64,000 nt of DNA, taken from positions 186,001-250,000 of the IMG/VR virus record IMGVR_UViG_3300032288_004964. The stretch is one strand, 5' to 3'. The notes beneath the pieces are model-generated. The model ran no database searches. It was not told the DNA's origin and saw only the letters and a list, made by a program, of their open reading frames with translations. The position numbers were made by a program, and so were the translations under genes. Shown here piece after piece: positions 3,254-60,242 of this stretch. Every line of letters begins with the position of its first letter. Position 1 is the first letter of the stretch.

Positions 3254-3997
3254 ATGAAAATTAAAAACTATAAACTATTCTTAGAATCAAATGAATTTGA
3301 TTTTGAATTTTTAGCAAATATTGGTAAAATGAAAGAAGCTATTCTTAAAATAGTCCAACTTCACGAACAAAAATGTTATGGTGATAATAAACTATCATCT
3401 TACGAAAGATTCAAAATTTCATTAAATGATCTAATAGATAGCGCTGTTAAAGGTGAATTTACAATTACTGAAGATTACTTATCTGTAATTAATTTATTCG
3501 AAAAAGAAGTTTATGGTAGGAGTTTACTAAATTCTTATGAGGAATCTATGTTTAGTCATATAGATGACTTAATATCTTGTTTTAATAGCTTATTAGATAA
3601 CAAGGAAAGAGATGAAGAAGATATTATGAGATTAGGTAAAGAAGCTGATCATTATTTAAATAAAATGGATGATACTTGGATTTATAGTTCAGAAGAATCT
3701 GATGATAGTGGTTCTGAAATTAATACTGATGGTATTGATGATGTTATTACCGGTTTGGAAGATAGATTATCTGAAGATGTTGATGATATGTGGACTTCTG
3801 AAGAAGATTTTGAAAAAGATATCGAAGGATATATTGGTAAAAAGATGGAAGATTTTGACTATTCTGAAAAACTTCAAGCTTATAAATATATTGAGAACAA
3901 ACAATGGGTAAAAAATATACTTGAAGGTGGTTCTCAAAAAGATAAAGATTTTGTTAATAATTTTCTTTCAGAAATGAAAGATTTATTTGAGCTATAA
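3254..3997 (+). CDS. Acidic hypothetical protein, putative head-internal protein (MKIKNYKLFLES)
   Basis: 247-aa ORF; N-terminal motif shared with several other ORFs in the window. Confidence 0.55.
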   Translation: MKIKNYKLFLESNEFDFEFLANIGKMKEAILKIVQLHEQKCYGDNKLSSYERFKISLNDLIDSAVKGEFTITEDYLSVINLFEKEVYGRSLLNSYEESMFSHIDDLISCFNSLLDNKERDEEDIMRLGKEADHYLNKMDDTWIYSSEESDDSGSEINTDGIDDVITGLEDRLSEDVDDMWTSEEDFEKDIEGYIGKKMEDFDYSEKLQAYKYIENKQWVKNILEGGSQKDKDFVNNFLSEMKDLFEL

Positions 3998-4012
3998 TTT
4001 AATATATACATT

Positions 4013-25453: not shown

Positions 25454-25538
25454 TATATTTTATATAAATTAAATATTAAAAGTTTAAAATAAATACAAAA
25501 AAGTGTGTAGGAAAGTGGTAATTTTTAATATATAATAT

Positions 25539-55105: not shown

Positions 55106-55127
55106 GTTACTTATATATTAAAATTTT

Positions 55128-55571: not shown

Positions 55572-55997
55572 ATGACACTAAAAGAAAGAATAAATGCTGA
55601 CTATATTAAAGCATTTAAGGAAAAGAACAGTATTGAAAAGAATTTGCTTTCAGTAGTAAAAGCTGAAATCACTACAATTGAAAAAAATACCTCGGTTGAG
55701 AATCTTTCGGATGCTGATGTTACAAAGATTCTTAATAAAACAGCTAAATCACTGAATGAAACTATTAAATCTTTAACATCTACTGATCATAGTGAAAATT
55801 TAGTACAAGCTTGTATGGAATTGGATATCATTCAAAGTTATCTTCCAAAACAAATGTCTAAAGAAGAAGTTGATGCAAAAGTAAATGAACTTGTTACATC
55901 TGGTATTACTCAAATTGGTGCTATTATGAAAGAATTTGCAACTTTACCAGTCGACAAGAAAATGGTTTCTGAGTCAATAAAAGAAATTGTAAAATAA
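55572..55997 (+). CDS. GatB/YqeY domain protein
   Basis: MTLKERINADYIKAFKEKN...YLPKQMSKEEV...IGAIMK. Confidence 0.85.
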   Translation: MTLKERINADYIKAFKEKNSIEKNLLSVVKAEITTIEKNTSVENLSDADVTKILNKTAKSLNETIKSLTSTDHSENLVQACMELDIIQSYLPKQMSKEEVDAKVNELVTSGITQIGAIMKEFATLPVDKKMVSESIKEIVK

Positions 55998-56045: not shown

Positions 56046-56255
56046 ATGAGTCTTAGAAATAACGGAATAATTTCAGAATCTGAATACAAAGGAAAAACCA
56101 TTGAAGAAGCTAAAAGATATGCTGAAGAAGGTGGATTTGTTACTAGAGTAGTAGAAGAAAATGGAATTGCTCTTATGTTAGACATGACTGCTAAATCTAA
56201 CAGAATTAACTTTAGAGTTAGAGATGGATTTGTAACCGCAGCATTTGGCGGATAA
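56046..56255 (+). CDS. Small protein resembling I78/potato-I-type peptidase inhibitors
   Basis: RVVEENG...DMTAKSNRINFRVRDGFV...GG pattern. Confidence 0.45.
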   Translation: MSLRNNGIISESEYKGKTIEEAKRYAEEGGFVTRVVEENGIALMLDMTAKSNRINFRVRDGFVTAAFGG

Positions 56256-56275
56256 TTTTTAATATATATAATAAT

Positions 56276-56320
56276 ATGATGTAGATTTTAACATATAACA
56301 ACTTAGAAAGACCTCCTTAA
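56276..56320 (+). promoter_or_regulatory. Leader ORF with internal amber codon: MM*ILTYNNLERPP (stop TAA)
   Basis: ATG ATG TAG ATT TTA ACA TAT AAC AAC TTA GAA AGA CCT CCT TAA after TAATATATA (56260-68); its last codons overlap the 5' arm of the terminator. Confidence 0.65.
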
Positions 56321-56385
56321 TAGGAATTTAACTGACTAGCTAAATAGCACTCGGTTAGACACTTATTATGGAGGTATTTTATTTT
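56311..56385 (+). terminator. Attenuator-type terminator upstream of the Pth2-like gene
   Basis: ACCTCCTTAATAGG (56311-24) pairs with CTTATTATGGAGGT (56362-75) with one mismatch, enclosing TAACTGA/TCGGTTA; followed by ATTTTATTTT. Confidence 0.6.
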
Positions 56386-56407
56386 AAACAAAAACAAAAA
56401 AACAATT

Positions 56408-56764
56408 ATGAACAATTAGATTAATGAAACAAAATTAATAGTTATCACAAGAAGTGATATCTCAAATGGCTACCAAGTAGTACAATCAACACATTCAATA
56501 GCAGACTTTGCCTTTGAATTTCCTCAAACATTCTCCCAATGGAAAGGAGAATCAAATTCTATTATCTGCCTTTCAGTTAAAAATGAATTTGAATTACAAA
56601 AACTTTATCATAAATACAAAGACCTGACCGAAACAGTTATGTTTTTTGAACCTGATGTAGATCAGTTTACATCACTGTGTCTTTATGGTACACCAAAAAT
56701 CCGTAAAAGCCTTTCTCACTTACCCCTGGCTCTAAAAAATAAAAATCAAGAAAATGAAATTTAA
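56408..56764 (+). CDS. Peptidyl-tRNA hydrolase 2 (Pth2)-like protein with in-frame TAG at codon 4 (not in the ORF track)
   Basis: MNN*INETKLIVITRSDISNGYQVVQSTHSIADF...W..ESNSIICLSV..EFEL...FFEPD...TSLCL...LPLAL; 118 codons with no other stop. Confidence 0.7.
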
Positions 56765-57437
56765 TTTATTCAAAAAAAAGGAAAAAGTGGTAGAACCAGT
56801 TTTACCTAAACCAGTAATATACACAGTTAATAATACAAATTATACTATAGAAGATAGTTTTCCAATAAAGATACAATCACAAGCTGGTGATGTTTCTGTA
56901 TATGGTTATACATTAGAAGTTAGATGGAAAGACCAAAAAGGAGAATGGTATAGTTGGATGACTTACTGGAATCATAGAATCTATGTTAGTAGAAGTTCAG
57001 CTTTAGATGCTGCTATTAAAGTATTCCCAAGCTATAGAGATGGATATGAATGGAGAATAACTCCACTTTACAAAATGACTGAACCAGAATACAGAGATTA
57101 TAAAATTGACCAATTATTATCAGAGAAAAAAGTTAATAGAGAACCAATTGTATATGAGATTAAAGCTTGGAAAGTAAAAGATGATTGTGAAATTCATTAT
57201 GAAAAAACAAACCATACTTACAAATACTCAAAAGGAACTTTATTCATCCAAATGGAGAATGGTAATATTGTAACAATAAAGGATCCAAGGACTTTTGTTG
57301 GATATGGTAGTAGACATCATCTATTTAATGAATTGGTTAAAGATGAAAGAGTAGAAGAAGTAGACATTCAAAATGAAAAGTGGGCACATCCTCACTTATG
57401 TAAAGAATTAAAAACAAAAATAAAAAATAAAAACTAA
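56754..57437 (+). CDS. Hypothetical protein with internal RDYKIDQLL motif
   Basis: 227 aa; overlaps the end of the Pth2-like gene. Confidence 0.6.
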   Translation: MKFNLFKKKEKVVEPVLPKPVIYTVNNTNYTIEDSFPIKIQSQAGDVSVYGYTLEVRWKDQKGEWYSWMTYWNHRIYVSRSSALDAAIKVFPSYRDGYEWRITPLYKMTEPEYRDYKIDQLLSEKKVNREPIVYEIKAWKVKDDCEIHYEKTNHTYKYSKGTLFIQMENGNIVTIKDPRTFVGYGSRHHLFNELVKDERVEEVDIQNEKWAHPHLCKELKTKIKNKN

Positions 57438-57441
57438 AATT

Positions 57442-58029
57442 ATGTTGTAGATTACAAAACAAGAATTAAGTCAAAAAATGACTGAATGTTATCAGACCAA
57501 AGGTCAGTCTGTTTTAGAACACGGCATTTCAGTTAAAAATTACTTATTTGATTTAGTCAATCATTTAAGAAGTAATGATCCATTACAATATGAATGGAAT
57601 CTACCAGATTGGTTATTGCAAAATAAAGACCTTATTTTATCATCATCACCAGATGATGAAACTCTAGAACTATACACAGTCTATCATGATTGTGGTAAAC
57701 CCTTTTGTACAGAAATAGATGAAAATGGTAAGAGACATTTTCCAAATCACGCGGAAGTATCTTATAACTATTTCAACCAAGTATTTAGTAACCCAGTCGC
57801 TGCAGATTTAATACTACATGATATGGACATTCATTTATTGAAATCCGATGGTGTTGTAGAATTCTGTCAGAATCCTCAAGCTTTAACTTTATTATTAACA
57901 GGTTTAGCCGAGTTACATTCAAATGCTCAAATGTTTGGTGGTACTCAATCAACCTCTTTCAAGATTAAATGGAAGAGTATTAATCAAAGAGGTAAACAAA
58001 TTATTAATCAACTAAAAAATAAAAACTAA
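57442..58029 (+). CDS. HD-domain hydrolase; probable true start 57442 with in-frame TAG at codon 3
   Basis: EHG...YHDCGKPF...HFPNHAEVS...HDMDIH motifs; ATG TTG TAG ATT is in frame with the annotated ATG at 57478. Confidence 0.7.
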
Positions 58030-58033
58030 AATT

Positions 58034-58417
58034 ATGAAAACAACAGAACAAATCAAATCAGAAATCGTTAATTATTTAACAAAAACATCAATTCACACTT
58101 TTGCGAAACCAAAATCAACTTATAAATATGGAAAAGAAGGTTCATATTATGAGTATGACTATGAAAACTTTACTTATTTCAAAGTATTTAAAAAAGATGA
58201 AGACTTTTATGTATTAGAGAATAGCAATGGTCAAAATACACCTACAACTTATAAGTTGAGAAAAATTGATATTGATTATTATATAACTTATTATGGTAAT
58301 AATGCTAAATGTGTTATTAGTAATAATTTATTCTTAGATAAAAAAATGAAGAGCACTAAGAAGAACAAGTATGTTATGTCTGAGATTGATGAAATTACTA
58401 AAAATATTACAAAATAA
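58034..58417 (+). CDS. Hypothetical protein
   Basis: 127 aa. Confidence 0.55.
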   Translation: MKTTEQIKSEIVNYLTKTSIHTFAKPKSTYKYGKEGSYYEYDYENFTYFKVFKKDEDFYVLENSNGQNTPTTYKLRKIDIDYYITYYGNNAKCVISNNLFLDKKMKSTKKNKYVMSEIDEITKNITK

Positions 58418-58449
58418 TTTGGTGGGTTAAAAAATTCATCTTATATTTG
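58418..58449 (+). promoter_or_regulatory. Bacteroidota-type sigma-A promoter (-33/-7)
   Basis: TTTG, 20-nt spacer, TATATTTG. Confidence 0.7.
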
Positions 58450-58455
58450 TATTCA

Positions 58456-58535
58456 TAAGGGTGTTAGTATAATACGCAAAACTTAATTATGATAAGCGCT
58501 TCCCATCTCGAAGGATAAAATCATAACCCTTTTTT
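58456..58535 (+). ncRNA. Candidate stand-alone small RNA of about 80 nt
   Basis: Starts about 7 nt after the -7 element; 5' AAGGG pairs with 3' CCCTT, TTATGAT pairs with ATCATAA, ends in a T-run. Confidence 0.45.
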
Positions 58536-58643
58536 GAAAAAAAATTAAAAAATATTAGGTAGATATAAAACTTTTATCTATATTTGTATAAAATAAGAAA
58601 AAAATAACAAAAGAGAGAATAATTTTTTAATATATAAGAAATA

Positions 58644-58774: not shown

Positions 58775-58810
58775 AAGTCCGAACTAAAAAGTTCGGACTT
58801 TTTTGTTTTT
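58775..58810 (+). terminator. Intrinsic terminator (attenuator) directly upstream of the first tRNA
   Basis: AAGTCCGAACT-AAAA-AGTTCGGACTT perfect 11-bp stem plus TTTTGTTTTT, 4 nt before tRNA-His. Confidence 0.85.
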
Positions 58811-58814
58811 ATAT

Positions 58815-58906
58815 GGTATCGTTAATGTTAGCGGTTAGTGTTGAGAAATCAACCAGCATATGGCTCTGTGAAAGCCAAGGGATGGATTCGAATTCCATAC
58901 GATACC
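58815..58906 (+). tRNA. tRNA-His(GUG) with G-1 and a hairpin insertion in the D-loop
   Basis: GGTATCGT/ACGATACC, TGGCT-CTGTGAA-AGCCA, ATGGA-TTCGAAT-TCCAT; D-loop contains GTTGA-GAAA-TCAAC. Confidence 0.85.
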
Positions 58907-58911
58907 CAAAA

Positions 58912-58987
58912 GGAACCTAAGCTAATCAGGTGAAAGCACTAGACTGAAAATCTAGGGAGCCCGGATCGATACCGGGAGGTTCCACCA
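58912..58987 (+). tRNA. tRNA-Phe(GAA)
   Basis: GGAACCT/AGGTTCC, CTAGA-CTGAAAA-TCTAG, CCCGG-ATCGATA-CCGGG, encoded ACCA. Confidence 0.92.
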
Positions 58988-58993
58988 AAATAT

Positions 58994-59067
58994 GGTGTGT
59001 GTAGCTCAATCGGTAGAGCGTTGGTTTGTGGAGCCAAAGGCAGCGGGATCGTAACCCGTCACACACC
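58994..59067 (+). tRNA. tRNA-His(GUG), second copy
   Basis: GGTGTGTG/CACACACC (G-1:C73), GCTC/GAGC D-stem, TTGGT-TTGTGGA-GCCAA, GCGGG-ATCGTAA-CCCGT. Confidence 0.9.
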
Positions 59068-59185
59068 CTGTAAGGATGGTAATCCCCTACTTTGAGTGAA
59101 AAGTAACGATGTGACGACAATCACAGAAGAGTGAAAAGTAACAAAAAAAGTAAAATTGTACTCCTCTCTTGTCGGAGAGGTAAAT

Positions 59186-59256
59186 ACGTCATACAGACAA
59201 GGTGTCGGTCAGGTCTCCAAAACCTCGATGGCTGGGTTCGATTCCTGGATGGCGTG
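59186..59256 (+). tRNA. tRNA-Trp(CCA)
   Basis: ACGTCAT/ATGGCGT acceptor, AGGT-CTCCAAA-ACCT, CTGGG-TTCGATT-CCTGG, G73. Confidence 0.85.
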
Positions 59257-59262
59257 CAAAAA

Positions 59263-59307
59263 ATGAAATATAAAAAAATGAAAACTAAAATGAAATATAA
59301 ACGATAG
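59263..59307 (+). promoter_or_regulatory. Lys-rich mini-ORF MKYKKMKTKMKYKR followed by an 11-bp hairpin, upstream of three tRNA-Lys genes
   Basis: 7 AAA codons in 14; stop TAG overlaps GGCAACGGTTC-ATAC-GGATCGTTGCC (59307-59332). Confidence 0.45.
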
Positions 59308-59345
59308 GCAACGGTTCATACGGATCGTTGCCCAAACAAGACAAT

Positions 59346-59418
59346 GATTCCGTAGCTCAATTGGTGGAGCTTCTGGCTTTTAACCAGAAGGTTGTGGGTT
59401 CAAACCCCACCGGGATCA
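59346..59418 (+). tRNA. tRNA-Lys(UUU), canonical type I
   Basis: GATTCCG/CGGGATC, TCTGG-CTTTTAA-CCAGA, GTGGG-TTCAAAC-CCCAC. Confidence 0.92.
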
Positions 59419-59427
59419 CTAAAAATA

Positions 59428-59512
59428 GATCCTGTCGCTTAGCGGCTATAGCAACTGGCTTTTAACCAGTAGAGAGAAATCTCAACCGTGGGTTCGAGTC
59501 CCACCAGGATCA
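59428..59512 (+). tRNA. tRNA-Lys(UUU) with long variable arm
   Basis: GATCCTG/CAGGATC, ACTGG-CTTTTAA-CCAGT, 17-nt variable region A-GAGA-GAAA-TCTC-AACC. Confidence 0.88.
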
Positions 59513-59517
59513 CTAAA

Positions 59518-59598
59518 GCTTTCGTCGCTTAGTGGCTATAGCAACTGGCTCTTAACCAGTCGAGAAATCAACCGTGGGTTCGAGTCCCACCGAAAGCA
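59518..59598 (+). tRNA. tRNA-Lys(CUU) with extended variable arm
   Basis: GCTTTCG/CGAAAGC, ACTGG-CTCTTAA-CCAGT, 13-nt variable region C-GA-GAAA-TC-AACC. Confidence 0.88.
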
Positions 59599-59607
59599 CA
59601 AATATAT

Positions 59608-59737
59608 GGGGAGTTAGCTCAGTGGTAGAGTATATATAACCTCTTTTGAAATTTTACCTCACAAGAGTGTTGATTAAAAGAGTTACTTCGTTTGAATTGA
59701 AATCAAAAGGTCATAGGTTCGAATCCTATACTCCCCG
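59608..59737 (+). tRNA. Interrupted tRNA-like gene of uncertain identity, with a 58-nt insertion between the D-arm and anticodon arm
   Basis: GGGGAGT/ACTCCCC acceptor, GCTC-AGTGGTA-GAGT D-arm, ATAGG-TTCGAAT-CCTAT T-arm, TTTGA-ATTGAAA-TCAAA arm. Confidence 0.6.
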
Positions 59738-59756
59738 CAAAAAAGAAAAATAAATT

Positions 59757-59831
59757 ATGAAAAATATTAATACATCAAAGTCGTCAAGTAGTCGCTCGTC
59801 AAGAATGAGTGAGATTCGATTGTATTCATAA
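59757..59831 (+). promoter_or_regulatory. Ser/Arg-rich leader peptide MKNINTSKSSSSRSSRMSEIRLYS
   Basis: 24 aa with 9 Ser and 3 Arg codons, upstream of a terminator and tRNA-Arg plus three tRNA-Ser. Confidence 0.8.
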
Positions 59832-59850
59832 TAGTCAGAAGATATTTATG

Positions 59851-59888
59851 AAACCCTCGAATCTAATGATTTGAGGGTTTTTTATTTT
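59851..59888 (+). terminator. Intrinsic terminator (attenuator) directly upstream of tRNA-Arg
   Basis: AAACCCTCGAATC-TAAT-GATTTGAGGGTTT 13-bp stem (one G-U) plus TTTATTTT. Confidence 0.85.
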
Positions 59889-59893
59889 AATAT

Positions 59894-59967
59894 GGTTCCA
59901 TCGTTCAACTGGATAGGACACTCGGCTACGAACCGAGAGATTGGGGATTCGAATTCCTCTGGAACTA
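59894..59967 (+). tRNA. tRNA-Arg(ACG)
   Basis: GGTTCCA/TGGAACT, CTCGG-CTACGAA-CCGAG, GGGGA-TTCGAAT-TCCTC. Confidence 0.92.
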
Positions 59968-59972
59968 CAAAA

Positions 59973-60059
59973 GGAAAAGTAACTTAGCCGGCGCTAAGCA
60001 CAGTCTTGAAAACTGCTGGTACCTACGGGTATGGGGATCGACACCTCACTTTTTCGCCA
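59973..60059 (+). tRNA. tRNA-Ser(UGA), atypical (6-bp D-stem, can fold 8/4)
   Basis: GGAAAAGT/ACTTTTTC, CTTAGC-CGGC-GCTAAG, CAGT-CTTGAAA-ACTG, long variable arm, GCCA end. Confidence 0.85.
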
Positions 60060-60062
60060 AAT

Positions 60063-60148
60063 GGAGAGTAATCTAGTCTGGTGACTAGCACCGCCTGCTA
60101 AGCGTGTGGTACGTTTAATCGTATGGAGTTCAATTCTTCTACTCTCCG
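60063..60148 (+). tRNA. tRNA-Ser(GCU), 8/4 cloverleaf
   Basis: GGAGAGTA/TACTCTCC 8-bp acceptor, GGAG-TTCAATT-CTTC 4-bp T-stem, CTAGTC-TGGT-GACTAG D-arm, CT-GCT-AA loop. Confidence 0.85.
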
Positions 60149-60153
60149 CAAAA

Positions 60154-60239
60154 GGAAGATAATCTAGTCTGGTGACTAGCCACGCCTGGAAAGCGTTGGG
60201 TGCGTTCAATCGCATGGGATTCGATTTCTCTATCTTCCG
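60154..60239 (+). tRNA. tRNA-Ser(GGA), 8/4 cloverleaf
   Basis: GGAAGATA/TATCTTCC 8-bp acceptor, GGGA-TTCGATT-TCTC 4-bp T-stem, same D-arm, CT-GGA-AA loop. Confidence 0.85.
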
Positions 60240-60242
60240 CAA

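Follow-up and report, generated by a model that had tools for sequence, protein, structure and literature searches.

The window examined in this study was a 64,000-nt stretch of a huge bacteriophage contig (IMGVR_UViG_3300032288_004964, positions 186,001 to 250,000), and all coordinates below refer to it unless stated otherwise; the parts of the locus described lie on the + strand. The upstream neighbor of the locus is a YqeY-like gene at 55572..55997 (Pfam PF09424, E 2e-19), which has a translation-related context and is conserved next to the locus in LR745206.1 and LR756502.1. It is followed by a promoter-like element at 56256..56275, directly before the ATG of a leader ORF. This element is the phage motif TTTAATATATA, which also lies 5-20 nt upstream of many ATGs in the window, and it overlaps a sigma-70-like match at 56245-56272 (TTGGCG-16-TATAAT, 10 of 12 in a consensus scan).

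The leader ORF (56276..56320) comprises 15 codons. It opens with ATG ATG TAG ATT (56276-56287; the amber codon is at 56282-56284), is read as M M (UAG) I L T Y N N L E R P P stop, and ends in CCT CCT TAA. These last codons form the 5' base of a long, imperfect hairpin at 56311..56375 (base CCUCC.../...GGAGG) that is followed by a U-rich run at 56376-56387. The Pth2-like gene starts at 56408..56419 with ATG AAC AAT and then TAG (56417-56419), with ATT as the next codon, and the body of the ORF occupies 56420..56764 (114 codons plus TAA). An ordinary gene of unknown function, orf227 (56754..57437), overlaps the end of the Pth2-like ORF by 11 nt; it has a normal ATG start, and it is present between the two TAG-bearing genes in close relatives but absent in others (e.g. 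the related locus L005). The HD gene starts at 57442..57450 with ATG TTG and then TAG (57448-57450), again followed by ATT (57442-57453 in all), and its body occupies 57451..58029 (192 codons plus TAA). The last gene of the run, orf127 (58034..58417), has an ordinary ATG 5 nt after the HD stop codon; the junction sequence AAAAATAAAAACTAAAATTATG is repeated at 57421 and 58013. A tRNA gene cluster (Phe, His, Trp-like, 3 Lys, Arg, 3 Ser) lies downstream at 58810..60240, and none of its members has a CUA anticodon.

The predicted products of the two genes were examined by profile searches and structural modeling. The Pth2-like protein matched the Pth2 peptidyl-tRNA hydrolase families only below the curated cut-offs (PF01981, 20.4 bits against 23; TIGR00283 in NCBIfam, 21 bits against 82), although some homologs carry a precomputed PF01981 hit. 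A profile search of the PDB found Pth2 chains at E 0.003-0.6. The AlphaFold model (pLDDT 78) had Pth2 structures as its best fold matches (2zv3, probability 0.99, TM 0.45-0.51, E 2e-3; also 1rlk), but the rmsd was high. Residues T10, R11, D13, Q19, H25, E77, P78 and D79 were invariant in an alignment of the family. For the HD protein, the match to PF01966 was weak (E 5e-4, 20.8 bits against a cut-off of 22); H24, H79, D80, H100, D124 and H128 were invariant in its alignment. The model had a pLDDT of 96; a fold search gave only weak HD-superfamily matches and no significant PDB match. A profile match to the HDxGKP region of A-/CCA-adding enzymes (3wfp-type nucleotidyltransferases, E 0.005) is the sole and weak support for the original prediction that this protein acts on RNA ends.

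The motif count alone is weak evidence for a special arrangement. The bare hexamer TAGATT occurs 141 times in the window against about 108 expected, and ATGNNNTAGATT occurs 6 times against about 2 expected. The significance comes from comparison with related loci. An ATG, 0-7 codons, and then TAG (TAG is codon 2-9, mode 3) precede the Pth2-like ORF in 96 of 101 distinct contexts, from 100% down to about 30-40% identity, and the HD ORF in 47 of 48. The minigene codons vary freely, while the stop is always TAG and the next base is always a purine. Across 129 related loci, an ATG minigene, a stop, and then an ORF of at least 80 codons occurred 207 times with TAG (121 Pth2-like, 58 HD, 28 mostly noise), but only 27 times with TAA and 13 times with TGA. 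The possibility that the TAGs are nonsense mutations or sequencing errors in decaying genes is refuted by these data: the feature is found in more than 140 distinct contexts from independent assemblies, including a Sanger-checked cultured phage (Tenacibaculum phage pT24), and the downstream ORFs are intact and conserved.

Reassignment of TAG throughout the genome (code 15, as in Lak or crAss-like phages) was also considered. Public gene callers translated many homologs with Q at this position, i.e. they applied code 15, and the relatives are huge phages, a group in which recoding is known. However, no long gene body in the window contains TAG, and 3 of 35 ORFs of at least 150 codons end in TAG. 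Treating TAG as sense added less ORF length than treating TGA as sense. In LR745206.1, 32 of 459 long ORFs end in TAG and none continues for 60 or more codons; in pT24, 28 of 240 long ORFs end in TAG, and a Pth2-HD fusion is the only minigene-TAG-ORF case in the genome. TAG thus terminates 7-12% of long ORFs in these two phages, with ordinary downstream-stop spacing, and TAA is the usual stop. Recoding of the whole genome is therefore very unlikely, and the original prediction that the window otherwise reads cleanly in code 11, with TAG a rare stop, holds. A search of LR745206.1, pT24 and the 129 loci for other gene families with such a start found none that is convincing; one weak candidate lies at LR745206.1 57949.

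The original prediction offered termination at UAG followed by reinitiation at the adjacent AUU as an alternative to read-through. ATT follows the TAG in 78 of 96 Pth2-like contexts, in 39 of 47 HD contexts, and in every leader, and AUU may act as a weak start codon, as in infC. This mechanism nonetheless does not hold in general. The next codon is GTA, GTT, AAC or ACA in 15 of 96 Pth2-like contexts and GTT or GTA in 4 of 47 HD contexts, and most of these are not near-cognate starts. The stop is always TAG, although TAA would serve reinitiation equally well. The 735-kb phage LR756501.1 carries a second in-frame TAG-ATT at codon 37, inside the conserved Pth2-like domain, where restarting would cut off conserved residues. 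Initiation further downstream is likewise excluded in many cases. Many Pth2-like ORFs have no ATG, GTG or TTG after the TAG; that in the window has none until 56639. The HD ORF in the window has an internal ATG at 57478, but two related loci (L107 and L074) lack it, and the model places residues 3-12, which lie upstream of it, in a confident helix. Reinitiation is thus improbable as the main route, although the frequency of AUU after UAG (about 82%) would also fit a minor contribution from it. Ribosomal bypassing, as in T4 gene 60, was rejected because the HD and leader starts have no matching codon pair flanking TAG ATT. A role for TAGATT as a Bacteroidota -7 promoter element (TAnnTTTG) does not explain the strict frame relation or the mid-domain TAG-ATT.

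A candidate decoder was sought among the tRNA genes. A canonical tRNA(CUA) is present on the window's own contig, outside the window and about 128 kb away (about 370132-370204 of the contig, equivalent to L171:221-293), and scores 59.5 bits against the Rfam tRNA model. Among the related loci, tRNA(CUA) is the commonest tRNA within 2.5 kb of the Pth2-like gene, with 19 calls in about 17 distinct loci. LR756500.1 and LR756501.1 have tRNA(CUA) 1-2.4 kb away. In pT24, one of only four annotated tRNAs is a tRNA-Sup, and it lies 2.5 kb upstream of the TAG-bearing Pth2-HD fusion. In LR745206.1, by contrast, ARAGORN with default settings found no CUA tRNA; only an unusual tRNA-like gene with a CUA loop was detected, using the relaxed setting and a 28.5-bit Rfam tRNA-Sec match that is below the 47-bit threshold, and a working decoder is therefore not certain in every genome. 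Moreover, most related loci were seen only as 5-kb pieces, so the co-occurrence of the early TAG and the suppressor in a given genome was assessed in only a few cases. A synteny search around the LR745206.1 candidate led to the suppressor on the window's contig, but to no tRNA in six other contigs. Exact-pattern scans of IMG/VR with suppressor anticodon arms returned only the window's own contig or unrelated contigs, the suppressor sequences being too diverse for this approach. Similarity to the phage's other tRNAs revealed no clear parent for the suppressor, and its amino acid could not be assigned.

All 143 of the early TAGs are followed by a purine, whereas true TAG stops are followed by T in 43% and by A in 40% of cases. 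A 3' purine appears to favor amber suppression in E. coli, and the invariable purine, usually as part of AUU, is read here as a context that favors the suppressor tRNA over release factor 1. The same observations could accommodate read-through by near-cognate tRNAs when release factor 1 is limiting or inhibited, in which case the operon would sense RF1 activity, as prfB senses RF2, and the linked tRNA(CUA) would be incidental. The absence of a canonical CUA tRNA in LR745206.1 and the conserved purine context are compatible with this view, as would be poor termination at stop codons very close to the start; in any case, competition between RF1 and the tRNA sets the output, so the RF1 level must influence it. 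Against it stand the linkage of tRNA(CUA) to these genes, its presence on the window's contig, and the arrangement in pT24; near-cognate read-through would also give very low yields for two conserved enzymes. Read-through without a dedicated suppressor is accordingly considered unlikely.

The leader and its hairpin were analyzed separately. The peptide pattern MM(stop)I.TY....PP(stop) is kept in about 30 distinct loci, and ATGATGTAGAT and CCTCC are invariant in the leader alignment; however, 92 of the loci examined lack the leader, which is thus absent from most lineages. The predicted fold is stable (MFE -29.8 kcal/mol, z -4.9), and four outer-stem pairs, including one at the third base of the second Pro codon, keep pairing through changes on both sides. 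Rfam gave no match at 56276-56400. A simple terminator scan did not call the hairpin, because the loop rule was exceeded, and the structure could act on translation or RNA stability instead. It is regarded as a candidate intrinsic terminator, and the transcriptional layer of control put forward in the original prediction is plausible but inferred.

Taken together, these results support the core of the original prediction, i.e. local, programmed control by UAG read-through rather than genome recoding, possibly driven by a suppressor tRNA. With fair confidence, although without experimental evidence of any kind, the locus is interpreted as an amber-suppressor-dependent expression module. The Pth2-like and HD genes each begin with an ordinary ATG, followed after 1-2 sense codons by a UAG that the ribosome apparently must decode to make the protein; if release factor 1 wins instead, only a di- or tripeptide is made. 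The decoder is most likely the phage's own tRNA(CUA). In this sub-lineage, a ribosome that reads through the UAG of the leader would reach and occupy the 5' base of the hairpin, preventing its formation and allowing transcription to continue, whereas a ribosome released at the UAG would leave the hairpin free to terminate transcription. The two enzymes would thus be produced in proportion to amber-suppressor activity in the infected cell.

No description of this arrangement was found in a literature search that was not exhaustive. Stop-codon recoding in phages with suppressor tRNAs, including a "code change module", has been proposed to time late and lysis genes (Borges et al., bioRxiv 10.1101/2021.08.26.457843), and that paper also notes standard-code phages carrying suppressor tRNAs. 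In both situations, a phage-encoded suppressor tRNA makes some genes translatable only after the translation environment of the cell has changed. Here, however, the genome stays in the standard code, and only one two-gene module (or a fusion of the two) carries the codon, a single UAG always within the first 2-9 codons and in a fixed UAG-purine context; it is conserved over a whole protein family and physically linked to the tRNA gene, and the products appear to be tRNA-related enzymes rather than lysis or structural proteins. The terms "peptidyl-tRNA hydrolase" and "N-termin" do not occur in that paper. In prfB, an early in-frame stop also makes output depend on the efficiency of termination, but a +1 frameshift at UGA is used and the product is the sensed factor itself; here, the event would be in-frame decoding of UAG by a tRNA. 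The leader resembles those of attenuators of the pyrBI type, in which a ribosome translating to the end of the leader blocks the terminator, and tnaC, which stalls at a stop, in that a short ORF runs into the 5' arm of a terminator-like hairpin; the controlling codon, however, would be a UAG read by a suppressor tRNA rather than a run of codons sensing a charged amino-acid tRNA or a nucleotide pool. The bar minigenes of phage lambda are likewise two- to three-codon ORFs linked by function to a peptidyl-tRNA hydrolase (here, a protein that is only Pth2-like), but they are free-standing, end in UAA or UGA, and act by starving a Pth-defective host of tRNA, whereas the minigene here is simply the unsuppressed reading of the enzyme's own start. 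The best sequence and fold matches of the two proteins are archaeal and eukaryotic Pth2 and the HD domain of class-II CCA-/A-adding enzymes, both below the curated family thresholds.

A more speculative, tentative possibility is that the tRNA(CUA) and the enzyme pair form a self-governing amber-suppression circuit. The phage would deploy the suppressor for a purpose other than reading its own genes, for example to disturb host termination or to evade a host defense, and the enzymes would act on that tRNA or its by-products, e.g. by recycling dropped-off or non-stop peptidyl-tRNA, deacylating the suppressor, or trimming or repairing its 3' end. Because synthesis of the enzymes would be a direct read-out of suppressor activity, the loop would hold suppression at a set level, a tRNA-level analog of prfB autoregulation. 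The occurrence of Pth2-HD fusions (in pT24 and at the related loci L102/L120), the presence in pT24 of the suppressor plus exactly one TAG-gated gene, and the location of distant, ungated Pth2-like genes beside tRNA(UUA) or tRNA(CUA) genes are consistent with this idea.

These genes are systematically mis-annotated: they are either truncated at downstream starts (JGI calls; gp293 of pT24) or force a whole contig to be called as code 15. The leader peptide, if its proposed role were confirmed, would represent an attenuator that senses a suppressor tRNA. The Pth2-like/HD enzyme family travels with these tRNAs and is present in the largest known phage genomes (462-735 kb), and the early TAG is kept in more than a hundred related phages. 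One of these, pT24, is cultured and carries the minimal version, i.e. one tRNA-Sup and one gated fusion gene, making the system tractable. Many phage genomes carry suppressor tRNAs with no obvious use, and this module may offer one. It would show that phages with an otherwise standard genetic code keep an amber suppressor tRNA wired to one dedicated module through a single early UAG, which would act as a regulatory switch rather than as a recoded sense codon.

The DNA analyzed is 28.7% G+C and densely coding in the standard code; it is part of the 385-kb contig IMGVR_UViG_3300032288_004964, and its nearest DNA relatives are the uncultured huge phages LR745206.1 (634 kb) and LR756502.1 (642 kb). 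The three early in-frame TAG-ATT codons of the original prediction were confirmed in the sequence. At 56276, ATG ATG TAG ATT opens a 15-codon ORF (the leader) that ends CCT CCT TAA at 56320. At 56408, ATG AAC AAT TAG ATT is in frame with a 114-codon ORF (Pth2-like) that has no ATG, GTG, or TTG until 56639. At 57442, ATG TTG TAG ATT is in frame with a 192-codon ORF (HD) that has an internal ATG at 57478. The hexamer TAGATT is frequent in this A+T-rich DNA (141 copies against ca. 108 expected). Motif counts alone are therefore not convincing, and the case rests on comparison with relatives. Two consecutive gene junctions (57421-57444 and 58013-58036) share the sequence AAAAATAAAAACTAAAATTATG, so both upstream proteins end in KNKN; the Pth2-like ORF ends with a related LKNKNQ.

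In LR745206.1, at about 70% DNA identity, all three features recur, although the HD minigene there is one codon longer and uses different codons. A protein search with the piece downstream of the stop identified 189 relatives. Those from ENA, Logan, and NCBI-derived gene calls begin MKQI..., MNNQI..., or MLQI..., whereas JGI calls begin at Val or Leu inside the first β-strand. Examination of the underlying DNA showed that the “Q” is a TAG that the gene caller had read under code 15. A total of 129 loci were then collected from metagenomes and IMG/VR, and the sequence upstream of each match was inspected. The Pth2-like gene was gated (i.e. its ORF was preceded by an ATG and an early in-frame TAG) in 96 of 101 distinct contexts, with the TAG at codons 2-9 (mode 3, counting ATG as 1) and followed by ATT in 78, GTA in 9, AAC in 4, ATA in 3, GTT in 1, and ACA in 1. 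The HD gene was gated in 47 of 48 distinct contexts, with the TAG at codons 3-8 (mode 3) and followed by ATT in 39, ATA in 4, GTT in 3, and GTA in 1. The codon before the TAG varies widely, but the stop is never TAA or TGA. Only the most distant Pth2-like relatives (34–40% identity) have plain ATG starts. Over all loci, an ATG minigene, a stop, and then an ORF of at least 80 codons occurs 207 times with TAG (121 Pth2-like, 58 HD, the rest mostly antisense noise), but 27 times with TAA and 13 times with TGA.

These data were taken to indicate read-through rather than reinitiation, error, or general recoding. Read-through is required for several reasons. Many Pth2-like ORFs have no ATG, GTG, or TTG anywhere after the TAG, and two HD relatives (loci L107 and L074) lack the internal Met codon. 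The alternative offered in the original prediction, termination followed by reinitiation at the adjacent AUU, is refuted as a general mechanism, as the codon after the TAG is often not a near-cognate start. Further, in the 735-kb phage LR756501.1, the gene has the usual ATG TCG TAG ATT and also a second TAG ATT at codon 37, inside the conserved domain. Finally, the AlphaFold model of the HD protein (pLDDT 96) places residues 3–12, encoded between the TAG and the internal ATG, in a confident helix.

The genomes are not code 15. No long gene body in the window contains TAG. In LR745206.1, which was scanned whole in 13 pieces, 32 of 459 ORFs of at least 150 codons end in TAG, and none of them runs on for 60 or more codons. 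Only the two genes under study are convincing gated cases in that genome; a possible third gated gene is located at 57937-58570 of LR745206.1, where ATG ATA AAT TCA TAG ATA is followed by a 206-codon ORF with an ATG at codon 8. The TAG context also differs from that of real stops: all 143 gated TAGs are followed by a purine, whereas true TAG stops are followed by T in 43% and A in 40% of cases. In E. coli, a 3′ purine probably favors amber suppressors over RF1. The repeated TAG-ATT, including the mid-gene one, fits a decoding context rather than a start codon.

The tRNA cluster of the window (58810-60240) has no CUA anticodon. Two tRNA-Lys genes in this cluster (59428-59513 and 59518-59599; anticodons UUU and CUU) carry an extra stem-loop in the variable region, giving 86 and 82 nt, which is unusual for tRNA-Lys; LR745206.1 has similar ones at 343293-343558. 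Three long-variable-arm tRNAs (59973-60055, 60062-60148, and 60154-60238) were missed by ARAGORN and scored by Rfam as tRNA-Sec-like (41–51 bits), but their anticodon loops read UGA, GCU, and GGA, so they look like tRNA-Ser genes. At 59608-59735 and 58810-58905 there are tRNA-like genes with good acceptor and T arms but large insertions, possibly introns; ARAGORN calls one only in intron mode, and Rfam matches only the 3′ half.

Default ARAGORN also finds no CUA anticodon among the 59 tRNAs of LR745206.1. A relaxed scan, however, found an odd tRNA-like gene at LR745206.1 507340-507420 (L016:17340-17420) that features a 7-bp acceptor stem, a 6-bp D stem, a canonical T arm, and a CUA loop; it scores 28.5 bits against Rfam tRNA-Sec, below the 47-bit threshold of that family. 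It belongs to a family of atypical tRNA(CUA)-like genes, also found in three of the collected loci (L056:2367-2438, L075:2373-2447, and L080:65-137), that have a 7–9 bp acceptor stem, a 6–9 nt linker before a long D stem, in most members a 6-bp anticodon stem, and a normal T arm. In L075, one sits in tandem with a canonical tRNA(CUA). Searching for the gene next to the LR745206.1 candidate led to the syntenic place on the window's own contig, which holds a canonical tRNA with the anticodon loop CUCUAAA (L171:221-293, contig ca. 370132-370204). This tRNA scores 59.5 bits against Rfam tRNA, has a TAnnTTTG-type promoter upstream, and lies about 128 kb from the gated genes. When ARAGORN was run over the 5-kb loci, tRNA(CUA) was the commonest tRNA next to the Pth2-like gene, with 19 calls in about 17 distinct loci, sometimes in tandem pairs and often within a few hundred bases.

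A tblastn search of GenBank phages found the family in five further huge-phage records (LR756500-LR756504), in Tenacibaculum phage pT24, and in Bixzunavirus mycobacteriophages. Every huge-phage copy that was opened is gated (LR756502.1, LR756504.1, LR756501.1, and LR756500.1; LR756503.1, which gave the same match at the same coordinates as LR756501.1, was not among these), and two of them, LR756500.1 and LR756501.1, have tRNA(CUA) 1–2.4 kb away. In pT24 (NC_049383.1; 234,670 bp), the two proteins are fused into one ORF of 314 codons, preceded by ATG AAA TAG ATA at 194083. GenBank annotates only a truncated CDS (HYP10_gp293) starting at 194218, which cuts off the first 42 codons after the amber codon, including the conserved first strand of the Pth2-like domain. 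An annotated tRNA-Sup lies at 191520-191593. A whole-genome census of pT24 gave TAA 204, TAG 28, and TGA 8 as stops of ORFs of at least 100 codons, and the fusion is the only minigene-TAG-ORF case in the genome. The genome announcement reports 4 tRNAs and does not mention suppression. The same fusion occurs in the loci L102/L120. In Mycobacterium phage HyRo (NC_028869.1), the annotated peptidyl-tRNA hydrolase (91619-91999) starts at GTG and is directly preceded in frame by ATG TAG; ARAGORN finds an unannotated tRNA(CUA) about 250 nt downstream (ca. 92250-92323).

About 30 distinct loci carry the leader ORF, with the pattern M M (UAG) I x T Y ... P P stop. In an alignment of the leaders (A2), the stretches ATGATGTAGAT and CCTCC are invariant. 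RNAalifold pairs CCUCC(N)U..UAG with its partner ending GGAGG, and four pairs keep pairing through changes on both sides. One of these involves the third base of the second Pro codon, so the peptide and the helix are both under constraint. A small invariant stem (AUGU / ACAU; window 56279-56294) places the UAG of the leader in its loop in all 24 aligned leaders, but it shows no covariation. In the window, the hairpin spans 56311-56375 (-29.8 kcal/mol, z -4.9) and is followed by a U-rich run. It is inferred, although it was not shown, that a ribosome that passes the UAG and sits on Pro-Pro-stop keeps the base of the hairpin open, so that transcription continues, whereas a ribosome released at codon 3 lets the hairpin terminate transcription. 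The leader is confined to one sub-lineage; in other lineages, the phage promoter motif or a tRNA directly precedes the gated ATG. This motif, TTTAATATATA(A), lies 5–20 nt upstream of many start codons in the window (e.g. 2290-2307, 4000-4012, 25520-25538, 55106-55125 on the minus strand, and 56256-56275) and is probably a phage-specific promoter that gives very short leaders. The tRNA genes and some other genes instead have a Bacteroidota-type TAnnTTTG element.

The first protein appears to be a distant Pth2 relative: its sequence matches fall below the curated thresholds, and the best fold matches of its predicted structure are Pth2 structures at TM about 0.5. The second has invariant His and Asp residues in a pattern resembling that of an HD hydrolase, with a weak profile match to the HDxGKP region of class-II A-/CCA-adding enzymes and no significant fold match. 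Their activities are unknown, but their fusion in two lineages argues that the two act together.

The general idea that phage suppressor tRNAs and in-frame stops can regulate gene expression has been published, and standard-code phages carrying suppressors are noted in that work. In the literature examined, no description was found of a single early UAG conserved across a protein family, in phages that otherwise use the standard code, physically linked to the tRNA(CUA) gene, gating tRNA-related enzymes, and with an amber-codon leader peptide in front of a terminator-like hairpin. The original prediction of local gating by UAG read-through is supported in its core, and a prfB-like feedback remains an open and attractive possibility. 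Distant Pth2-like genes with ordinary ATG starts lie beside tRNA(CUA) (loci L150 and L151) or beside tRNA genes with the ochre-type anticodon UUA (L145:3092-3167, L146:3092-3167, and L147:3099-3174 and 3596-3669), and next to another distant, ungated Pth2-like gene lies an ORF with a GGQ release-factor-type motif (L144:4847-5260). With ordinary-start members found beside tRNA(UUA) as well, the enzyme family seems to accompany suppressor tRNAs in general.
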